In this document: piece after piece, positions 14,901-64,000 of the stretch
Position numbering within the stretch: the stretch's first letter is position 1
How the letters are laid out: each line of letters opens with the position of its first letter
Source of the DNA: Salpingoeca rosetta
Taxonomy: Eukaryota > Protista > Choanoflagellata
Assembly (NCBI GenBank): GCA_033442325.1
Contig: JAWQFM010000001.1
Coordinates: 265,376-329,375 of the forward strand
Direction of reading: 5' to 3'
Length of the DNA stretch: 64,000 nucleotides
Made by a program: the position numbers and the translations under genes
The notes under the pieces: model-generated
What the model saw: only the letters and a program-made list of their open reading frames with translations
Told to the model about the DNA's origin: nothing
The model's database searches: none

Positions 14901-17822
14901 TGCCTGTTTGTGTGTGTGTGTGAGTGTGAGTGCCTGTTTGTGTGTGTGTGTGAGTGTGAGTGCCTGTTTGTGTGTGTGCGTGTGAGTGCGTGTGTGTATC
15001 TGTTCGCATGATGCTTTGTGGAGTTGTGGTTGGTTGTTGGTCACAGGTGACTGCCTCGCTTTCAACCCACATGTGCATGCGCACAACTACCCTTTCACAC
15101 ACACACACACGCGCGCACGCACGTTAACAAACACCAACACAAAACATCGCTGGCATGCAGTCCGAAGTGATCTTGTGACGGCCATGTTTGATCGTGAGTT
15201 CATCGAGACGCTGTTCAAGCCACAGCCAATGTACGACCAAGCACAGCTCATGTCCATGCTGGACCACTTTTCCCAAGCAAGCATCATTCGCCTCAATGCC
15301 AAGAGCTTGTCCAAGGTGCTAGACTGGAGTCTCGAACGCTCATGTCATGTGTGCGAGATTCCGGATGCCATTATTTGAACCAGTGCATTTGTGTGCATTT
15401 GTGTTCCTCGCTGATTGCTAGTTTGTGTGCGTTGCTTGGTGCTTTGTTGGCCCTGTGATGTGACAATATGACATTTGACATTGCCCTGTGATGTGACAAT
15501 ATGGCATATGCCATTGACTGACCGCCGTCGCCCCCTGCACCTATCCATCCTTGATCGCTTGCAGCTGTTTGACTTGATGATCATGACAGTCAAGTATCAA
15601 TTCTCCTTATGCAAGTGCGCAAAGGAGATGCTTGCAGTGACCCTGACCCATCTGGAAGTGGTGCATGACACACTGCACCTCTCCCAGTCGTGCCAGCAGC
15701 TTGTTGAACACACCATCAACCTGGTCAAGGAGGTGCGCCCCATGCATGCGTCTGTGTGCATGCGTGTATGTGTTGTGTGCGTGTCAGAGGTTGTACATGT
15801 GCGCGTGAGAGGTTTTGTGTGCGTGTGAGAGTTTGTGTGTGTGTGTGTGTGTTTGTGTGCATGTGCAAATGCTTGTCCTCATGTTCATCCTGTTATTCCA
15901 TGTGTTACATCCTCGCATGCTTCCATCCAATCCATTTGTGGACTGGGCAACCGCCAGCGGTACGGCAGCTTGAGCACGGGCACGTGGCAGAGGATTCGGC
16001 ACGTCATCGGCTGCGTTCTTCAGGACAAGCACACACGCGTACGCTCTTGTCGTTTATCTCATTTCATTTAGCAGGCGGTGCAAAGAAAGTACGGAAACTG
16101 ACAGGTGTGACTGCACATTCCTTTCCTCACAGCTTGCACATGCGCGCATTGTATTGTGTTTCTGTGCGGGGGGTGTGTGTGTGTGTGTGTGTGTGTGCGG
16201 GGTACTACGCTGTGGAGAAAAAAAAATAAACAATTAAAATCCCCATGGGGGGGTTAAAAAAAAAAANNNNNNNNNNNNNNNNNNNNNNNNNNNNNNNNNN
16301 NNNNNNNNNNNNNNNNNNNNNNNNNNNNNNNNNNNNNNNNNNNNNNNNNNNNNNNNNNNNNNNNNNNNNNNNNNNNNNNNNNNNNNNNNNNNNNNNNNNN
16401 NNNNNNNNNNNNNNNNNNNNNNNNNNNNNNNNNNNNNNNNNNNNNNNNNNNNNNNNNNNNNNNNNNNNNNNNNNNNNNNNNNNNNNNNNNNNNNNNNNNN
16501 NNNNNNNNNNNNNNNNNNNNNNNNNNNNNNNNNNNNNNNNNNNNNNNNNNNNNNNNNNNNNNNNNNNNNNNNNNNNNNNNNNNNNNNNNNNNNNNNNNNN
16601 NNNNNNNNNNNNNNNNNNNNNNNNNNNNNNNNNNNNNNNNNNNNNNNNNNNNNNNNNNNNNNNNNNNNNNNNNNNNNNNNNNNNNNNNNNNNNNNNNNNN
16701 NNNNNNNNNNNNNNNNNNNNCAGTTTACATGCACATGCGTGGCATGTGTTCCCGCACACACACAGGCACATATACACACACGCGCCCACCAACACACACA
16801 CACACAGGCACATATACACACATACACGCCCGCCAACACACGCGCAGACGATGCGTGATTATCTTCCTGTCAGTTTGGCTCACATGGCGTGCGCGTGTGC
16901 AGACTGCGCTGCAAGGGCTCAACTTGCTGGCGCGACTGGTGGGCGGCAAGAAGGAGGCCAAGCTCTTCCCGCTGCTGCTGTTCTCCGCACACGGCGGTGG
17001 CGATGATGAGGATGACGACGACGATGTGCTGGACGTCGACGATGTCGACGCAAACGCCAGCTCAGATGCACTCACGTGGGTGGGCTAGCTTTTCCCTTTT
17101 GCGCGCGTGTGTGTCTGTGTCTGCGTCTGTGTCTGTGTCTGTGTGTAAGTTGAAGGGCTACCACTGCTGCATTGTCTGACCTGTTTTGAACTTGGTTTTG
17201 TTGGAATGCATGGTAGGCTTGGCGGGACACACTCTGTGCTTCACGTCGAAGCATCAACGGGGCGCCAAGGTGCGTATATCGCTTGCGCGCGCGCATGTGT
17301 GTGTGTGTGTGTGTGTCTAGCTAGCTCCCTCGCTCAACGCCAAACTTCTTGCTGCTGCACTTTGCCTGAACACTGGCATTTTATATATACAAAAAAAAAA
17401 CACCCCTGCATGTAAGCTCGCACTGACGAACCCACACATACACCCCGNNNNNNNNNNNNNNNNNNNNNNNNNNNNNNNNNNNNNNNNNNNNNNNNNNNNN
17501 NNNNNNNNNNNNNNNNNNNNNNNNNNNNNNNNNNNNNNNNNNNNNNNGCGCCAATGCCCGCTAGCAACCCATGCATGACCACAACCACAACCACAACCAC
17601 AACCACGACCACGACCGCAACTCCAAACACGACAACGACGGCATCCACCATGTCAATGGATTCCTACATTTGGCACAGGGACCCCGTCTTCGTCTTCTAC
17701 GTGAGTAATGGTCATGGTGCGGTGGTGGTGGTGGTGGTGATGATGGTGGTGGTGGTGGTGATGATGATGGTGCTGCTTCTTTTCCTGTGTCATCATCGGC
17801 GTCATCATCATCACCAGCACCA

Positions 17823-17915
<93 letters not shown>

Positions 17916-18078
17916 CACATACACACACGCACGCACACGCACAGAACTGCGCGATATGATGAAGGACTTTGATGATGCCGATGATGATGACGACACGAGC
18001 GGGAGCAGGAGGAGGCCGCGTCACGCAAGCGACACGGGTGCAGGGGATGACTTGCTTGCCATGATGGATGCCCTTTGA
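14713..18078 (+). CDS. OSCP1: Organic solute carrier partner 1 (OSCP1/NOR1) homologue; multi-exon, spans two assembly gaps
   Basis: Spliced MARCALPVLLLNLNCEMLYVIEERL..., ETLFKPQPMY, SQASIIRLNAKSLSK/LFDLMIMTVKYQ, GLNLLARLVGG and C-terminal GDDLLAMMDAL are all typical OSCP1 motifs. Confidence 0.9.
16267..16720. other. Assembly gap (N run); probably hides OSCP1 exon(s)
   Basis: N run, preceded by low-quality-looking homopolymer sequence. Confidence 0.99.
17448..17547. other. Assembly gap (100 N)
   Basis: N run. Confidence 0.99.
17548..17772 (+). repeat. About 225-bp exact direct copy of 20851-21075 (a TMEM175-like exon end plus intron start)
   Basis: Identical sequence gcgccaatgcccgctagcaacc...ttctacgtgagtaatggtcatgg... 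at both positions. Confidence 0.93.
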
Positions 18079-56569: not shown

Positions 56570-56702
56570 CTTGGTCGTTGATGACTCATCAACCAATCAC
56601 AGAAGAAGAAGAAGAACAAAAAAAAAAGAAGAAGTGCGCGAACGACCAAGAAGCAAGCGAACGAGCAACCAAGCAGCGAGCAAGACAGACAGAGAAGACG
56701 GG

Positions 56703-57181
56703 ATGGAGGATGGGTCGTGTCCGTACGAGGTGCTGGGTGTGCCCACCACCGCAACAGAGGCAGAGGTATATGCAGTCGCACACGGGGGTATTGCGGTGTG
56801 TGGTTGAGTGAGAGAATGAACGTGAGGTACACACGTTTGTTTGTGGTCGTCGGGTGGAGTGGGAACAACCATTGCACTCATCGATTGCAACACGTTGTCT
56901 GCCACTCATCACAAATGCTGTGCTGTGCAGATTCGCAAGGCATACAAGAAGCTGGCCCTCAAGTACCACCCCGACAAGAATCCAGATGACCCAGAGACAG
57001 GTGTGTGTGTGTGTGTGTGTCGAAATGAAAGGTGGATGATGGGAGAAGTGCTCATGTTGTTGGTGCTGTTGTTGGGGTGGGTGAAGTGATATGGTACGAT
57101 ACGTGAAGAAGACGACCAACAACAAAGGAAGCAAATGAAAGAAGTGACACGTGCAGATGCATCTGATCTCACCTCTCATAC

Positions 57182-57242
<61 letters not shown>

Positions 57243-57882
57243 ACACACACACTCGCACATCCCATGGGGTGTCAGCGGAGAAGATGTTCCGGCGAGCTGT
57301 CATGGCATCAGAGATGCTGCTGGATGCCACAGCAAAGGTGAGACACACACACACACACAGAGCGAACAAGAGGAGGCTTGTACGTCGTTCACCAGTCTTC
57401 AAGACGTCTTTGTGGACGTCGTGCTGGACGAGGTGTTGGAGTGGTTGCCGTTCTTTCTGGTGGTCTTTACTCACACAACACACACCACACGCACACAACT
57501 GCTGTAGGCTGCATATGACAAGGTGTTGAAGGCGAGGCAGGCTGCACGCGTGCGTTCGGAGAAGATGGATGCAGAGCACCGCAAAGCAAGAGAAGGTGTG
57601 TCTCGCTGTGCTGTTGGTTGTGGAAGCGTGCCTTTGTGCGCGTGTGACTGGGTTGTGTTGCATCTTATGTGTGTCCCTGTGGTCTTGTTGCCATCGTGGA
57701 TGCATTCACACTCACCCACACACACACGCGCACATTCAATTGCGTGCATGCCGTTGACTGGCAGACCTTGAGGCGAGGGAACAGGCACACAAGCGCAGCA
57801 AGACTGCAGCAGAGACATTGCAACGTGACTTGGAAGCACAGGTGTGCTCCTGCGCTGCGCTTTGCTGATGTCTTGCACTTGT

Positions 57883-57977
<95 letters not shown>

Positions 57978-58691
57978 CCCCTGCCCAGTATGAGCAGCCA
58001 CCATCATCATTACTCACCACGTTGCTGCCTGTCGCCTTGATGACAGATTCGCAGATTACGGGCTGAGGGCGCACGCAAGCTACAGGTGTGTGTGCGCGCG
58101 TGTGTGCGTGTGTTGGTCTATGCCACTGCTCCCGTGCGTTGATCCCTGTCTTATCACTGCCACCACCACCACCATCACCATCGTCACCGTCTCCACACTT
58201 CTGCTGCGCAATCCCTTGCAGGAGGAAGAGGACAGGTTCAGGGAAATGCTGAGGACAGCGAATCGAGGAGATCAGGTGGTGAGTGTGTGCGAGTGTGTGC
58301 GAGTGTGAGTGAGTGTGCATTCGTGCGAGTGTATGTACCCACAATATCAACCTTTGTGGATTGCTGCTGGGGTTTGCGCAGCGCTGGCAATGCGTCCTGT
58401 GTTGGTCACACACACACACACATACACACACACGCTGTTGCATCCTGTGATTTGTGACATGCCCTCTCACAACCTCAATGTACGAACACCACTTTGCTGA
58501 CGATACCATGTGTGTGTATGTGTTCCTTTGTGGTTTGTGTCATTGCTGATTGGTTGATTGCACAGGATGCGACGGTGGTGAAGAGCGACTTCTCCGAGGA
58601 CTTTGAAGCAAAAGTGCTGGCACGCATGCGTGCTCATGGCCACGCACGAAGAGAACACATGCAGCAGCAACAGCAGCAACAGGCTGCGTAG
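56703..58691 (+). CDS. DNAJC17: DnaJ protein, DNAJC17/Cwc23-like (J domain + coiled coil + C-terminal helix)
   Basis: [70 protein letters not shown]. Confidence 0.8.
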
Positions 58692-59301: not shown

Positions 59302-62300
59302 ATGGCTCTGTTTGGTGGCGCCAGCCAGGGTGCTGGGCGCACTGCGCTGTGCAACGGCGACTTTGTGTCGCTGTTTGTGGAGGAGCTCAAGGGCTTCGCC
59401 AGCGTGGACATTCTGTCGACGCGCGAGGTCACCGTGTACCAGGGCGACACGGACTCCGCGTTTGATGGCAGCACAAGCACCAAGTCATCCTCGGAGACCG
59501 CGACCGCGCCCAACTTTGAGCAGTCGTGCGTCTTCCAGATCAAGGCGGTCACCGATCTGCCGGAGGGCGCCAGCCTCAAGTACGGTGATGTCGTGCGCAT
59601 CATCCACCGCAGCACCCAGCGCAGCATGACGCGCCAGAACCGCGCCGTCAACGGCAAGCACGCCGTGGCGCTGGAGAACACGGACCGTGCCGCCGCGCAC
59701 TTCCGCCTCCTCCCGCGCTTCAAGATCCGCTCCGTCGGCGAGCCCGTGCTGCTCAACGACCAGGTCATCTTCCAGAACGAGGTGGTCATCGAGGGCAACC
59801 GCACGTACCTGATGACGGACCGGCCAGAGGACTCGCCCAAGGTCCTCATGGAGTGCGGCTCAAGCAAGACCACGGGCATCCGCGTGCGCCTGTTTGCGGC
59901 CTACAACGTCTCCAGCAAGGCCTTTGTCCACGTCCTCAAGGGCGGCGACTTTGTGCGCCTGTTCCACCACGAGGCCAACGGGTTCCTTGTCGTTGCGCGC
60001 CACATTGGCACGGGCGATGCGCACGACTTCCTCGGCCGCGACAACACCGTGTGCCTGCGCACCTTGGCCGTCGGCCGCAGCCCGGACGAGTACCACGACG
60101 CAAGCTCCATCTGGCAGGTGGAGCTCGAGGACACCCAGCGCCGCGGCGGCAGGCCCGTGCTGTGGACGGACCGCGTGCGCCTGAAGAACGTCCTCACCAA
60201 CGAGTTCCTGGATGTGCGCACCACGTCGTCCACGGGGGCCATGGCGCCCACGGCAGACAAGGGCAGCTCCAACCTCTTCTCCTTTGTGCAGTCGACGCAC
60301 TCCGCGCAGGAGGGCGACGCGCCCGCCACGGCGCTGCTGTCGCGCCAGGAGGACCTGCGCATCCCCTACCACACGTTCTTCTTCCTGCGCGGCAGCGGCA
60401 ACCCGGAGGTGACGGACCAGTTCCTGCACGTGGACTCGGAGCACTACGCCGTGGAGGAGGACGAGGAAGGCGACGACACCGGGCAGAGCAGCACGTTTGC
60501 GCAGACGGTGCTCATTGCCACGCACGACGAGGACGCCTTCTCGCTGCAGTCCGTGCACCAGCAGGACATTCGCGACTTCTACTACGCGCTCGGCCACGTC
60601 AAGGTGCTCACGCGCCTGGCAGCAGACGACGTGCTGACAGACGTCACCAACCCCGTGCACGCGGACCTGTACAAGCGCGCGCGCCGCAGCATCCACGCGC
60701 TCATCCAGTTCTGCTCGGAGGACAAGATTGAGGATGATGAGGACGTGGTGGGCCGCGCCAACACCCTGCACCAGAACATCCTCTTTGACCTGCAGGTGCA
60801 GGTGCCGCTCATGAAGGTGGTCAGCCTTCCCTTCCACGGCGCACACTGCGCAGAGTGGGGCAAGGGGTGGCGGGAGCGCCTGACACAGACACAGTACCGC
60901 CACTACAACAAGCTCGCCCGCGACGTGTACCGCCTCATCAGCTACCTGTGCCGGGAGAACGTGCACATTGGGCTCATGTTTGCCAACGCGCACCTGACGG
61001 CCATGATCAACCAGTGCCGGCTGATTGGCTACCTGGACGGCATCAACTGGGACATTGCCGACGCCATTGACGAGATGTTTAAGGACAACACCATCCTGCT
61101 CAACCGCGTCACGAAGCAGTCGATTGAGACATACCTCTCCCTCATCCACGAGGCGCACACCACCACCGCTCTCGAGCAGTACCTGCGCCTCCTCGCCGCC
61201 CTGTGCTCTGTCGACGGTGAGGCCATCACCTCCACCCAAGCCAGCATCCGCGACCTCATGCTTGTTCCTGGCGCGCCGTCAGCGGACGTTCTGCCCTCCA
61301 TCGCCAACGGTCCCAGCGGCATGCGCATCACCGCGCGTGTGCTCACCCCTGGCAAGCCCTTCCGCGCATGGAGCACCGTGACCCTCCCCTTACAGGAGTA
61401 CCTGAAGGACCACGACAACCTCGAGTACTTTGACGCCACGCTGGAGCTGTTTGCCCAGCTGTGCCTGGAGGGCAACTGCCAGGGCGAGCTGCGCGCGGCG
61501 GCCCGCACGCCCTTCCCCATGATCATGGGCGCCCTCAAGTCGCAGCTGCCGCCGCACGTCAAGGCGCGCTTCTGCACGCTCCTCGTCAACCTGTACATCG
61601 ACGGCGACGACCTGCCGGACGTGGACCACTCCAACCGGCGCTGGCAGGACCTGGCCAACCACAAGTCGCACGCAAAGCTCAAGACTGCGGCGGTGCAGCT
61701 GTTTGACGTGGACGAGGTGGTGAACTGGGTGGAGGCGTACCTGTCGCAGAACGGCCTGCTCACCTACAACCACGAGTACCACAGCGCAGCCAACAGCAAG
61801 AAGCCCGAGATGATCGCCCTCAAGCAGGACGAGCTGCACCGCAACATGCTCACGGAGCAGGTGGTGCACGTTGCGCTTGCCCTGGTGAACAAGGGCCTGT
61901 ACTGGGACGCCGGCAGCAGGAAGCGGCTGGTGCGGCTGCTGCTCACGCTGCTCGTGCGTACGCACCCGGGCGAGAACGATGACCTGAGCGCAACATCGTC
62001 GCTGGACGTGGTCATGCAGGCCAAGACGCTGGTGTGCCGCGCCCTCGGCGCGTGCATGGACGCGAACCTGGACGAGGTGGTGACGGAGCTGCTCACGGCG
62101 TTCAAGAAGGAGTATTTGGCGCACAAGCACAAGCACATTGAGGCGCACGCGGACGACCGTGCCCTGCACGAGGTCAGCCTCATCCAGCACAACGGCGATC
62201 ACCGCCACTTCTTCGAGACGGACGGCCTGTCGCAGCAGCAGATTGTGCACCTGCTGCTGGCGCTGACAACCTACCCGAGCGACGGGCTGCGGGTCGCGGC

Positions 62301-64000
62301 GCTCAATCTCCTGCTGCGCTGCTTCAACGTCAAGGGCTCCGTGCTGGCCCGCCTGTCGGATGTCGTCGTCATTGCAGACAGCAAGGACGAGGCTGCCCTG
62401 GAGAAGCTGGAGCAGCTGCTGCTGACGCTCAAGCACGAGGACCATGACGACCTGCACACTGCGGCCGCGCACATGACTGAAGAGATTGAGTGGATGTGCT
62501 CGCAGTGCATCACCGTCAACGGCACGCTGGCAGCCGACCTGCTGGCCCCCGGGGACAGCAGCAGCAGCAGCAGTAAGGCGGGGAGGAGGAAGCGGAAGGG
62601 CGTGAGTGGCCCACGTCTGCCGTGGCGCAAGCCCGGTGTGAGTATTGAGCCGCACCATGCGCACCAGGAGATGATGCGCAACGCCAACGCGCACAAGGCC
62701 GTACTGCACATCCTTCACCACCACCTCTCTGGCGCCGACCTCAAGACGGCGCTCAAGGACGACCGAGCGCGGGATCTGTTTGCCGCGTGTTTTGAATTCC
62801 TCGCCTTCTTCTGCCTGCACAACAAGCACAACCAGGAGCTGCTTGGGCACGCGCACGACATCTCGTTCTTCGTGCACGCGTGCTCGTACGGCATCCACGC
62901 AGAGAAGGTGCTGCACCGTATTCTGGAGGGCGAGCCCGACCTGGTGCAGGAGCACGTGGTGGACGAAGGCAAGGTGGACCGCCTCATTGCAGACCTGATC
63001 AAGGAGCCGCGCTGTCGCAACGTCGACTTCCTCAAGCTGATGGAGGTGATTGTTGCGCCCACGGGCACGCCCTCGCGGGAGCTACAGGACCTGGTGGGCG
63101 AACATTTCCTGCAGGCAGAGGAGAAGAGCCATCTCTTTGAGCACGAGCTTGGTTCCTCCCACTTCATCTCGTTCATCGTGTCCACCTACACCAAGACCGG
63201 TGGTCGTGGTGATGACGAAGATGATAATGGCACCAGCGCACAGCCGCTCTCCGCCCGCGAGCATGATCTCCGCGATTTCTTTGAGCAGCTGCTGTCATTC
63301 TATGCGGTGACAGCGCACGGGAACCAGGGCACCGCAGCCCATGTTGCCAAGCACGTGCCGCTCGCTGAACTTGCACAGCCCTTCATTGACGGCGTCACAC
63401 TCCCAACCGCCACAAAGGTGCTTATGTGTGTGTATTTCGTGTATTTCGTGTGTGTGTGTGTGTGCGTGTGTTTGTGGTGAGGATTTGTGTCTTATGTGTG
63501 TATTTCGTGTGCATCTGTGATAATGCCCTGTTCTGAAATGTTGCAGCTCCGTTCATGTTCACTTTGACACTGTGTGCTCGCCGTGTTTCATTCTTGCATG
63601 TGTATGCCTTCACTCTCAGACTCACATTTCTTTCCTTCCACGCACACGCACAAACACACGCACACATGCACGCACAAATACACATACACACATACACGCA
63701 CGCACGCACGCACGCACAAACACATACACACGCACGCACGCACAAACACACATACACACACATGCACGCACAAATACACATGCACACACACCGCCAGTCT
63801 CGCCTGCTGACGCTGATCCGAGATGTGTACCTGCTGCACGGCACGGACGAGGATGGCGATGGTGTTGTCGACGATGTTGATGCTGAGGATTTTGGATTCG
63901 TGTCTGCCGCAGCCAAGCAGGAGACGTGCGTGAGACTCTGTGGACCCCTGGCCAACGAGCTGCGGGCCATCGACAAGGGGTGGAAGCACAAGCCAAGCAA
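59302..64000 (+). CDS. ITPR: Inositol 1,4,5-trisphosphate receptor-like channel (suppressor, MIR and RIH domains), 5' part only; first exon about 4.1 kb
   Basis: LCNGDFVSLF, LKYGDVVRIIH, FRLLPRFKIRSVGEPV, LKGGDFVRLFH, SSIWQVE, RVRLKNVLTNEFL, HDEDAFSL, KARFCTLLVNLYID, HQEMMRNANAHKAVL, FLAFFCLHNKHNQELL. The gene continues past the window end. Confidence 0.92.

Follow-up and report, generated by a model that had tools for sequence, protein, structure and literature searches.

Canonical inositol 1,4,5-trisphosphate (IP3) receptors (IP3Rs; ITPR1–3, the IP3R-A clade) are proteins of ~2600–2900 residues in which a β-trefoil, a second β-trefoil with the MIR domain, two RIH domains, RIH_assoc, six transmembrane helices and a zinc finger follow one another in that order. 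Their relatives, the ryanodine receptors (RyRs), are ~5000 residues long and lack the residues that coordinate IP3; in them the N-terminal module of three domains serves as an allosteric ring. Alzayady and colleagues reportedly distinguished, in 2015, the families IP3R-A and IP3R-B; the IP3R-B of Capsaspora is reported not to bind IP3. Members of the superfamily without IP3-binding residues have already been described among parasite homologs (PMC3194816) and in Phytophthora (PMC4820453). Here we consider a further member, encoded near the end of a 64,000-nucleotide stretch of contig JAWQFM010000001.1 (C1) of the choanoflagellate Salpingoeca rosetta (C1:265376–329375, referred to as the window). 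An earlier note on this stretch, the original prediction, saw in it an IP3R-like channel that has lost most of its IP3-coordinating residues. The reading that we favor, with moderate confidence, is that the window encodes the N-terminal half of a channel subunit of the IP3R/RyR superfamily that would form tetramers in endomembranes, belongs to a separate choanoflagellate clade, is most likely not gated by IP3, and would use its N-terminal module as an allosteric ring in the manner of the RyRs. Full-length protein analyses rest on P0001, the 2637-residue database model of the window gene, and relatives within S. rosetta were sought in a genome of 55.4 Mb on 68 contigs.

The ligand site carries most of the argument. 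We compared the protein by phmmer with the mouse and rat IP3R1 chains 5xa0 and 3jav (IP3R1 numbering being checked by counting in the alignment), by MAFFT with three animal IP3Rs and a sponge IP3R, and by hmmalign within a profile-based alignment that spans 136 family members. The three motifs lie where the original prediction put them: CLRTLAV (C251–V257, 60052–60072), NTLHQNILFDLQVQ (N487–Q500) and CRENVHIG (C550–G557, 60949–60972). In the first, which replaces FLRTTGR, all three methods retain the first arginine as predicted (R265 = R253), and T266 = T254 is kept too; T267 becomes L255, G268 becomes A256, and a one-residue insertion sets R269 against G258, next to R259 (phmmer). On the α-side helix R504, R506, K508 and R511 become T488, H490, N492 and F495, so the changes foreseen at R504, K508 and R511 recur in every alignment, MAFFT and hmmalign concurring with phmmer for both of these motifs. 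The segment as a whole passes from net positive in IP3R1 to net negative. The third prediction, Y567/R568/K569 to N/V/H, stands in that no Y-R-K is found in any register, and gives way on the exact register, which is ambiguous (V/H/I by HMMER, A/N/A by MAFFT and hmmalign) because the clade carries an eight-residue insertion there.

Two of the twelve IP3-contact positions (R265, T266, T267, G268, R269, R504, R506, K508, R511, Y567, R568, and K569) are thus kept, namely R253 and T254. As the first 720 residues are 22% identical to those of animal IP3Rs, this is a background level of conservation. The canonical IP3Rs of the sponge Oscarella, the choanoflagellate Hartaetosiga and Corallochytrium keep 10–12 of the twelve. 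A second tally, over the ten basic residues that we take to be those important in IP3R1 mutagenesis, also leaves two (R241 = R219 and R265 = R253), K249 for instance becoming G227. Ten is likewise the number of basic IP3-binding residues cited for the receptor elsewhere (PMC3194816). The multiple alignment that the original prediction had proposed as a check leaves the ligand sites largely non-basic, and, with nearly all phosphate-coordinating residues absent from the pocket, the protein is most likely insensitive to IP3, as had been proposed. The wording that these residues were lost fares less well: they are absent, and loss presumes an IP3-binding ancestor, while the position of the clade is unresolved and an affinity to RyRs is not rejected. 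Across the superfamily, to judge from the sequences compared, absence of the IP3 residues is common and less surprising than the original prediction held.

The scaffold around this site is recognizably that of an IP3R. An AlphaFold model of residues 1–720, built on a 10-sequence alignment, reaches a pLDDT of 78 and a pTM of 0.68, and in Foldseek it matches IP3R3 and IP3R1 best (E 7e-29 to 1e-24, TMq 0.64–0.70), with RyRs lower (TMq 0.52–0.56); an ESM Atlas look-up returned generic IP3R/MIR/RIH clusters only. The claim of a well-conserved scaffold accordingly survives for the fold, which is borne out by the Pfam domains Ins145_P3_rec, MIR and RIH as well as by the structural match, and not for the sequence, whose identity is low, nor for the suppressor domain in full. 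The whole clade is without the ~45-residue helix-turn-helix arm that canonical IP3Rs bear in this domain (window 59494–59560, residues ~65–87). The S. rosetta copies bear a low-confidence Ser/Thr-rich insert at residues 49–69, in place of that arm.

A retained clam-shaped fold (AlphaFold, Foldseek) leaves room for the idea that the cleft was rebuilt for some other small ligand, such as another inositol phosphate, a nucleotide-derived messenger or a metabolite, which would make the protein a ligand-gated channel of new specificity. We regard this as unlikely. Its best support lies in the 10-sequence clade alignment, where the cleft lining is conserved: R253, Q491, D496, L497, N553 and G557 are invariant and H490 is present in nine of the ten, which gives the helix signature (T/I/S)xHQNxLxDL. 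However, Q491 and D496 match Q507 and E512, conserved in IP3Rs, and so look structural rather than newly gained, whereas the positions that replace ligand residues vary within the clade (T/I/V/Y at 488, N/T/V/I/R at 492, F/G/L/A/V at 495), and the cleft shows no new cluster of conserved charged residues. RyRs, moreover, use the same module ligand-free. The suggestion in the original prediction that another ligand gates the channel at the same pocket finds no support here, since what replaces the IP3 residues is a conserved helix signature (H490, Q491, D496, L497) and not a new charged pocket.

It is also conceivable, if rather improbable, that a response to IP3 persists through non-canonical contacts at lower affinity, as in the divergent trypanosomatid receptors. 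R253 and T254 would be available for such contacts, R259 lies near the position of R269, and Euglenozoan relatives show a similar P-H-Q-F pattern. This would have to work, however, with the four α-side basic residues and Y-R-K gone and the charge of the helix reversed. K508 and R511 are individually essential in IP3R1 mutagenesis, and both are replaced here; R259 is not conserved in the orthologs, and the same genome holds a canonical IP3R.

Where, then, does the gene belong? When 1.84 billion representative proteins were searched with a profile of the N-terminus of the window clade, 1649 relatives passed E<=0.001, of which 145 also passed E<=1e-30. All named close matches are choanoflagellates (S. 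kvevrii, S. urceolata, S. helianthica, Choanoeca perplexa, and Mylnosiga fluctuans) and the other close matches are metagenome proteins, so that the clade comprises six named choanoflagellate species including S. rosetta, with four loci, together with the metagenome proteins. Among the relatives found by the profile, the canonical set of R-T-R, RRKR and YRK with a GGGxGD filter characterizes one clade, and many lineages are without the ligand residues. The window clade has a signature of its own, R-x-L followed by (T/I/S)-H-N-hydrophobic, joined to a non-GGGxGD pore, and all its full-length members combine the remodeled ligand site with the alternative pore loop. A distinct clade whose named members are choanoflagellates only, set apart from IP3R-A, the B-like clade and proteins of RyR architecture and remodeled at both ligand site and pore, appears to be new in the literature searched.

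A phylogeny with ITPR, RyR and protist relatives, which the original prediction had also proposed, sets this clade apart. IQ-TREE (47 sequences, 1042 columns, LG+C20+F+G4) gives 100% SH-aLRT each to the IP3R-A, B-like and window clades; the A and B-like clades leave the window clade out, and its stem measures 1.02 substitutions per site. The B-like clade unites genes of S. rosetta (contigs C3, C12, and C11) and of other choanoflagellates with proteins of the sponge Corticium, of the hemichordates Saccoglossus and Glandiceps, molluscs and an annelid, has no vertebrates, and is presumably, on its taxon range, the IP3R-B of Alzayady et al. 2015. Approximately unbiased (AU) tests on IQ-TREE searches constrained under the site-homogeneous model LG+F+G4 reject nesting of the window clade in the choanoflagellate B-like genes (p=2e-5), a sister position to the B-like clade (p=0.009) and a sister position to IP3R-A (p=0.003; 0.0033). 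Grouping with RyR is not rejected (p=0.27), with one RyR in the set, long branches and possible long-branch attraction. Ordinary IP3R-B membership, which had been our first expectation, was thus rejected by the tree and the AU tests once the B-like clade had been identified; also rejected was the Euglenozoan P-H-Q-F signature as a shared derived state, as the Euglenozoa proteins group apart from the window clade. Because it lies outside the IP3R-A and B-like clades, the gene is indeed informative for IP3R/RyR evolution, as had been anticipated. The channel domain of the paralog on contig C10 scores 91 bits against RyRs and 70 bits against IP3Rs, and this higher RyR score would fit a RyR-like way of working.

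The likenesses and differences to the described families follow from these data. In length and domain order the window protein resembles the canonical IP3Rs, and IP3R3 and IP3R1 are the nearest to its N-terminal fold; it differs from them at the ligand positions, in the suppressor arm, in the pore, and in lying outside IP3R-A. It resembles the B-like proteins in an IP3R-like architecture without SPRY domains or RyR repeats and in non-canonical β-side ligand residues and Y567 position, but those proteins keep an R-E-R-Q-K-L-x-R helix, R-K at 568/569 and, mostly, a GGGLGE pore, none of which is found in the window clade. With the RyRs it shares the lack of IP3-coordinating residues; the channel domain of C10 scores better against them than against IP3Rs, and the AU test does not reject a grouping with them. 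It is, however, half their size (2637–2906 residues) and has no GGGIGD pore. Neither SPRY (PF00622), RyR-repeat (PF02026) nor EF-hand domains were found in P0001 or the C10 paralog (Pfam, E<=0.01). Divergent protist homologs (trypanosomatids, oomycetes, and ciliates) mostly keep a GGGxGD-type filter, in contrast to the window clade (PMC3194816 and our survey). The window clade differs from them further in that its named members are only close relatives of animals and that canonical IP3R, B-like and RyR genes are found beside it in one genome.

The downstream pore region, which the original prediction wanted inspected, has the six-transmembrane architecture with S5 and S6 and lacks the GGGxGD filter. 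At the position of GGG(V/I)GD (G-x-R-x-G-G-G-(I/V)-G-D in canonical IP3Rs), P0001 reads G-F-Y-S-S-P-V-F. All full-length clade members have a loop of the same type, with the pattern G-(F/Y)-x-(S/G/A)-(S/P/A)-P-x-F, and S5, S6 (GIIIDSF) and the C-terminal C2H2 zinc finger align in the window gene and the clade and are conserved within it. One metagenome protein of the clade, P0005 (ENA, 2943 residues), bears past the channel domain a C-terminal extension with ankyrin repeats and a DEP domain (precomputed Pfam) that is unique in the clade. The Ca2+ sensor shared by IP3Rs and RyRs consists of two glutamates in ARM3 (rat IP3R1 E1978 and E2042) and a linker backbone contact (PMC9522344). The clade appears to keep this sensor in part only. 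The first of the two sites is Asp in the C10 paralog and S. kvevrii. The second, which in IP3Rs and RyRs lies in the context T-L-T-E-Y-x-Q-G-P-C, is Glu in four members (S. kvevrii, S. urceolata and, from metagenomes, P0005 and P0031), Ser in P0015, Gly in S. helianthica, and Ala in the S. rosetta paralogs on C18 (P0002, residue ~1845) and C10 (residue ~2050). With a pore loop without GGGxGD and an alanine at one Ca2+-sensor glutamate in the readable S. rosetta paralogs, the label of Ca2+-release channel given in the original prediction is not secured.

Such a pore invites the proposal, also made in the original prediction, that the protein is a modulatory subunit, that is, a non-conducting partner that co-assembles with IP3R-A, B-like or RyR subunits and tunes them; the nine superfamily loci of S. 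rosetta could in principle mix. We find this proposal unsupported and consider it distinctly improbable. The conserved S5, S6 and zinc finger of the clade, together with the presence of four paralogs of the same type, suggest self-assembly, and in its transmembrane region the clade has diverged strongly from IP3R-A and the B-like proteins.

The gene is intact and under purifying selection. Its first exon is free of stops over 4.1 kb, and the window gene and the C18 paralog, which are two loci rather than haplotigs given their unrelated flanks, differ by 35 synonymous and 9 non-synonymous changes, with a ratio of non-synonymous to synonymous substitution rates (dN/dS) of 0.078; against C10 the ratio is 0.42. 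Full-length orthologs exist in six species, those of the five other choanoflagellates as complete open reading frames (ORFs) in transcriptome assemblies, and contigs from 11 runs presumed to be RNA hold 72–84% of the sampled words of exon 1. That the gene might be a decaying or non-functional copy whose ligand residues went through relaxed constraint, as their background-level conservation and the assembly gap in the gene model could suggest, is extremely improbable in the face of the uninterrupted exon, the motifs conserved across the clade and the presumed RNA runs, and we rejected the pseudogene reading on dN/dS and the orthologs.

Several observations nevertheless weigh against the reading that we favor, an IP3-insensitive subunit with a RyR-like gating ring. 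First, R253 is invariant in the clade, and R259 stands one or two residues from the position of R269. Second, the clade-conserved H490, Q491, N492, D496, N553 and G557 could mean a site that was rebuilt rather than abandoned. Third, trypanosomatid homologs are without many of the same basic residues (PMC3194816) and are nonetheless treated as functional IP3 receptors (PMC9799330), so that sequence alone cannot prove insensitivity. Fourth, the Ca2+-sensor region of the window copy falls in a gap of 100 Ns (C1:331023–331122), and the sensor is read only in relatives. Finally, the deep nodes of the IQ-TREE phylogeny, with its long branches and one RyR, are unresolved.

The features of the window gene and its three sister loci are collected in Table 1. 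Exon 1 carries Ins145_P3_rec (PF08709, 25.8 bits; cut-off 23), MIR (PF02815, 36.5 bits; cut-off 25.6) and, in two stretches, RIH (PF01365, 108.9 bits, E=3e-31). Past K1372, exon 2 supplies SRLLTL, and the remainder of the gene, with ARM2/3, the six transmembrane helices, the pore loop and the zinc finger, lies at C1:329376–333600, where Ion_trans (residues 2360–2509 of P0001) scores 24.0 bits, just under its cut-off of 25. The 100-N gap lies inside the gene ~1.6 kb past the window end. About 320 residues that are present in the C10 paralog (ARM3/RIH_assoc with the Ca2+-sensor glutamates) are unassembled in the window copy, and P0001 is ~270 residues short. Because of this gap RIH_assoc is missing from P0001; it is found in the paralogs on C18, C34 and C10, and through them the superfamily set (Ins145_P3_rec, MIR, two RIH, then RIH_assoc, six-transmembrane Ion_trans and zinc finger) is present in full. 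Intron 1 (63418–63797) and the upstream intergenic DNA (56600–58500) are dominated by microsatellites of the (CA)n/(GT)n type. Elsewhere in the window, G+C falls sharply to 0.39 at 16001–18000, the rest lying at 0.53–0.65.

Table 1. Features of the superfamily gene in the window (window positions) and of its same-type paralogs (contig positions).
Feature	Position	Strand	Basis
Exon 1 of the IP3R/RyR-superfamily gene (ATG to K1372, 1372 codons)	59302–63417	+	ORF of 4116 nt; 100% identical to P0001 residues 1–1372; Pfam domains
First β-trefoil, suppressor-domain-like (~residues 15–225)	59344–59976	+	PF08709 at residues 65–159; AlphaFold strand pattern
Second β-trefoil, MIR, equivalent of the β part of the IP3-binding core (IBC-β; ~residues 211–417)	59932–60552	+	PF02815 at residues 211–334; model strands 217–417; Foldseek IP3R3/IP3R1
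β-side ligand loop C251–R259 (CLRTLAVGR); equivalent to IP3R1 F262...R265-T266-T267-G268-R269	60052–60078	+	Three alignments
First RIH/ARM1 helical domain, IBC-α equivalent (~residues 420–654)	60559–61263	+	PF01365 at residues 463–654 (six-frame match C1:326063–326641); model helices 420–653
α-side ligand helix N487–Q500	60760–60801	+	Three alignments; Q507 = Q491 kept, E512 position = D496
Third ligand segment C550–H564; equivalent to IP3R1 D566-Y567-R568-K569	60949–60993	+	Clade-specific 8-residue insertion
Second RIH domain	62644–63114	+	Six-frame PF01365 match C1:328019–328489, 55.7 bits; second RIH stretch of Pfam
Intron 1, GT...AG, 380 nt	63418–63797	+	Read from sequence; junction K1372/S1373 confirmed by P0001
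Start of exon 2, which runs past the window end	63798–64000	+	Sequence and P0001
Paralog on C18	C18:1212900–1221500		97.8% nucleotide identity to the window gene; unrelated flanks
Paralog on C10	C10:118923–127640		One intron-less ORF of 2906 codons; 57% amino-acid identity to the window gene
Paralog on C34	C34:45100–53600		100% identical to C10 over the first 315 residues, divergent later

The window gene is thus one of nine superfamily loci in the S. rosetta genome and one of four of its type, on C1, C18, C10 and C34, the last of which matches the NCBI protein PTSG_13018 of S. rosetta. The patterns of identity among the C18, C10 and C34 copies point to recent duplication or gene conversion within the family. 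Of the other five loci, the multi-exon gene on C20 is a canonical IP3R, which keeps FLRNTTR, KDRQKLMREQ and DYRKNQ and whose pore domain is 40% identical to a RyR query. The gene on C16 is of RyR type: its pore resembles that of RyRs, and it bears three RyR repeats, which no other contig of the genome has. The genes on C3, C12 and C11 are B-like and keep the basic helix motif, with a GGGLGE pore in C3 and C12. The C11 gene (C11:1789300–1790100, minus strand) has E-G-F-G-G-V-L-V-P-E at the pore, yet retains the R-E-R-Q-K-L-L-R helix.

How might such a protein work? In the mechanism that we propose, the two β-trefoils and the ARM/RIH module retain the IP3R-like fold around a cleft that would offer no surface for binding phosphates, only two of the ten basic residues being left and the four on the α side having become T, H, N and F. 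IP3 would then not open the channel. The N-terminal module would instead be a structural and allosteric gating ring, as in the RyRs, rather than a sensor of a small ligand, and IP3 signaling in S. rosetta would be left to the canonical C20 paralog, whose site is intact. A bolder proposal, which we advance tentatively and hold to be possible rather than probable, is that the giant release-channel-like proteins of this clade make up a fourth family in the holozoans, alongside IP3R-A, IP3R-B and RyR and with choanoflagellates as its only known carriers to date, which has shed both the IP3 site and the GGGxGD filter and, in S. rosetta, lost one Ca2+-sensor glutamate, and whose gating signal and ion selectivity may be unlike those of the characterized members.

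Loss of the IP3-binding residues alone, being common in the superfamily, would not surprise a specialist. Because no living lineage is closer to animals than the choanoflagellates, their Ca2+-signaling genes are used to reconstruct the inheritance of the first animals. Beside a canonical IP3R, B-like genes and a RyR, S. rosetta has a four-copy family that bears the receptor scaffold without the IP3 pocket or the classical pore filter. If its products are working channels, they would amount to a natural experiment on what an N-terminal "ligand-binding" module does without its ligand and on how far the pore of these proteins can change.

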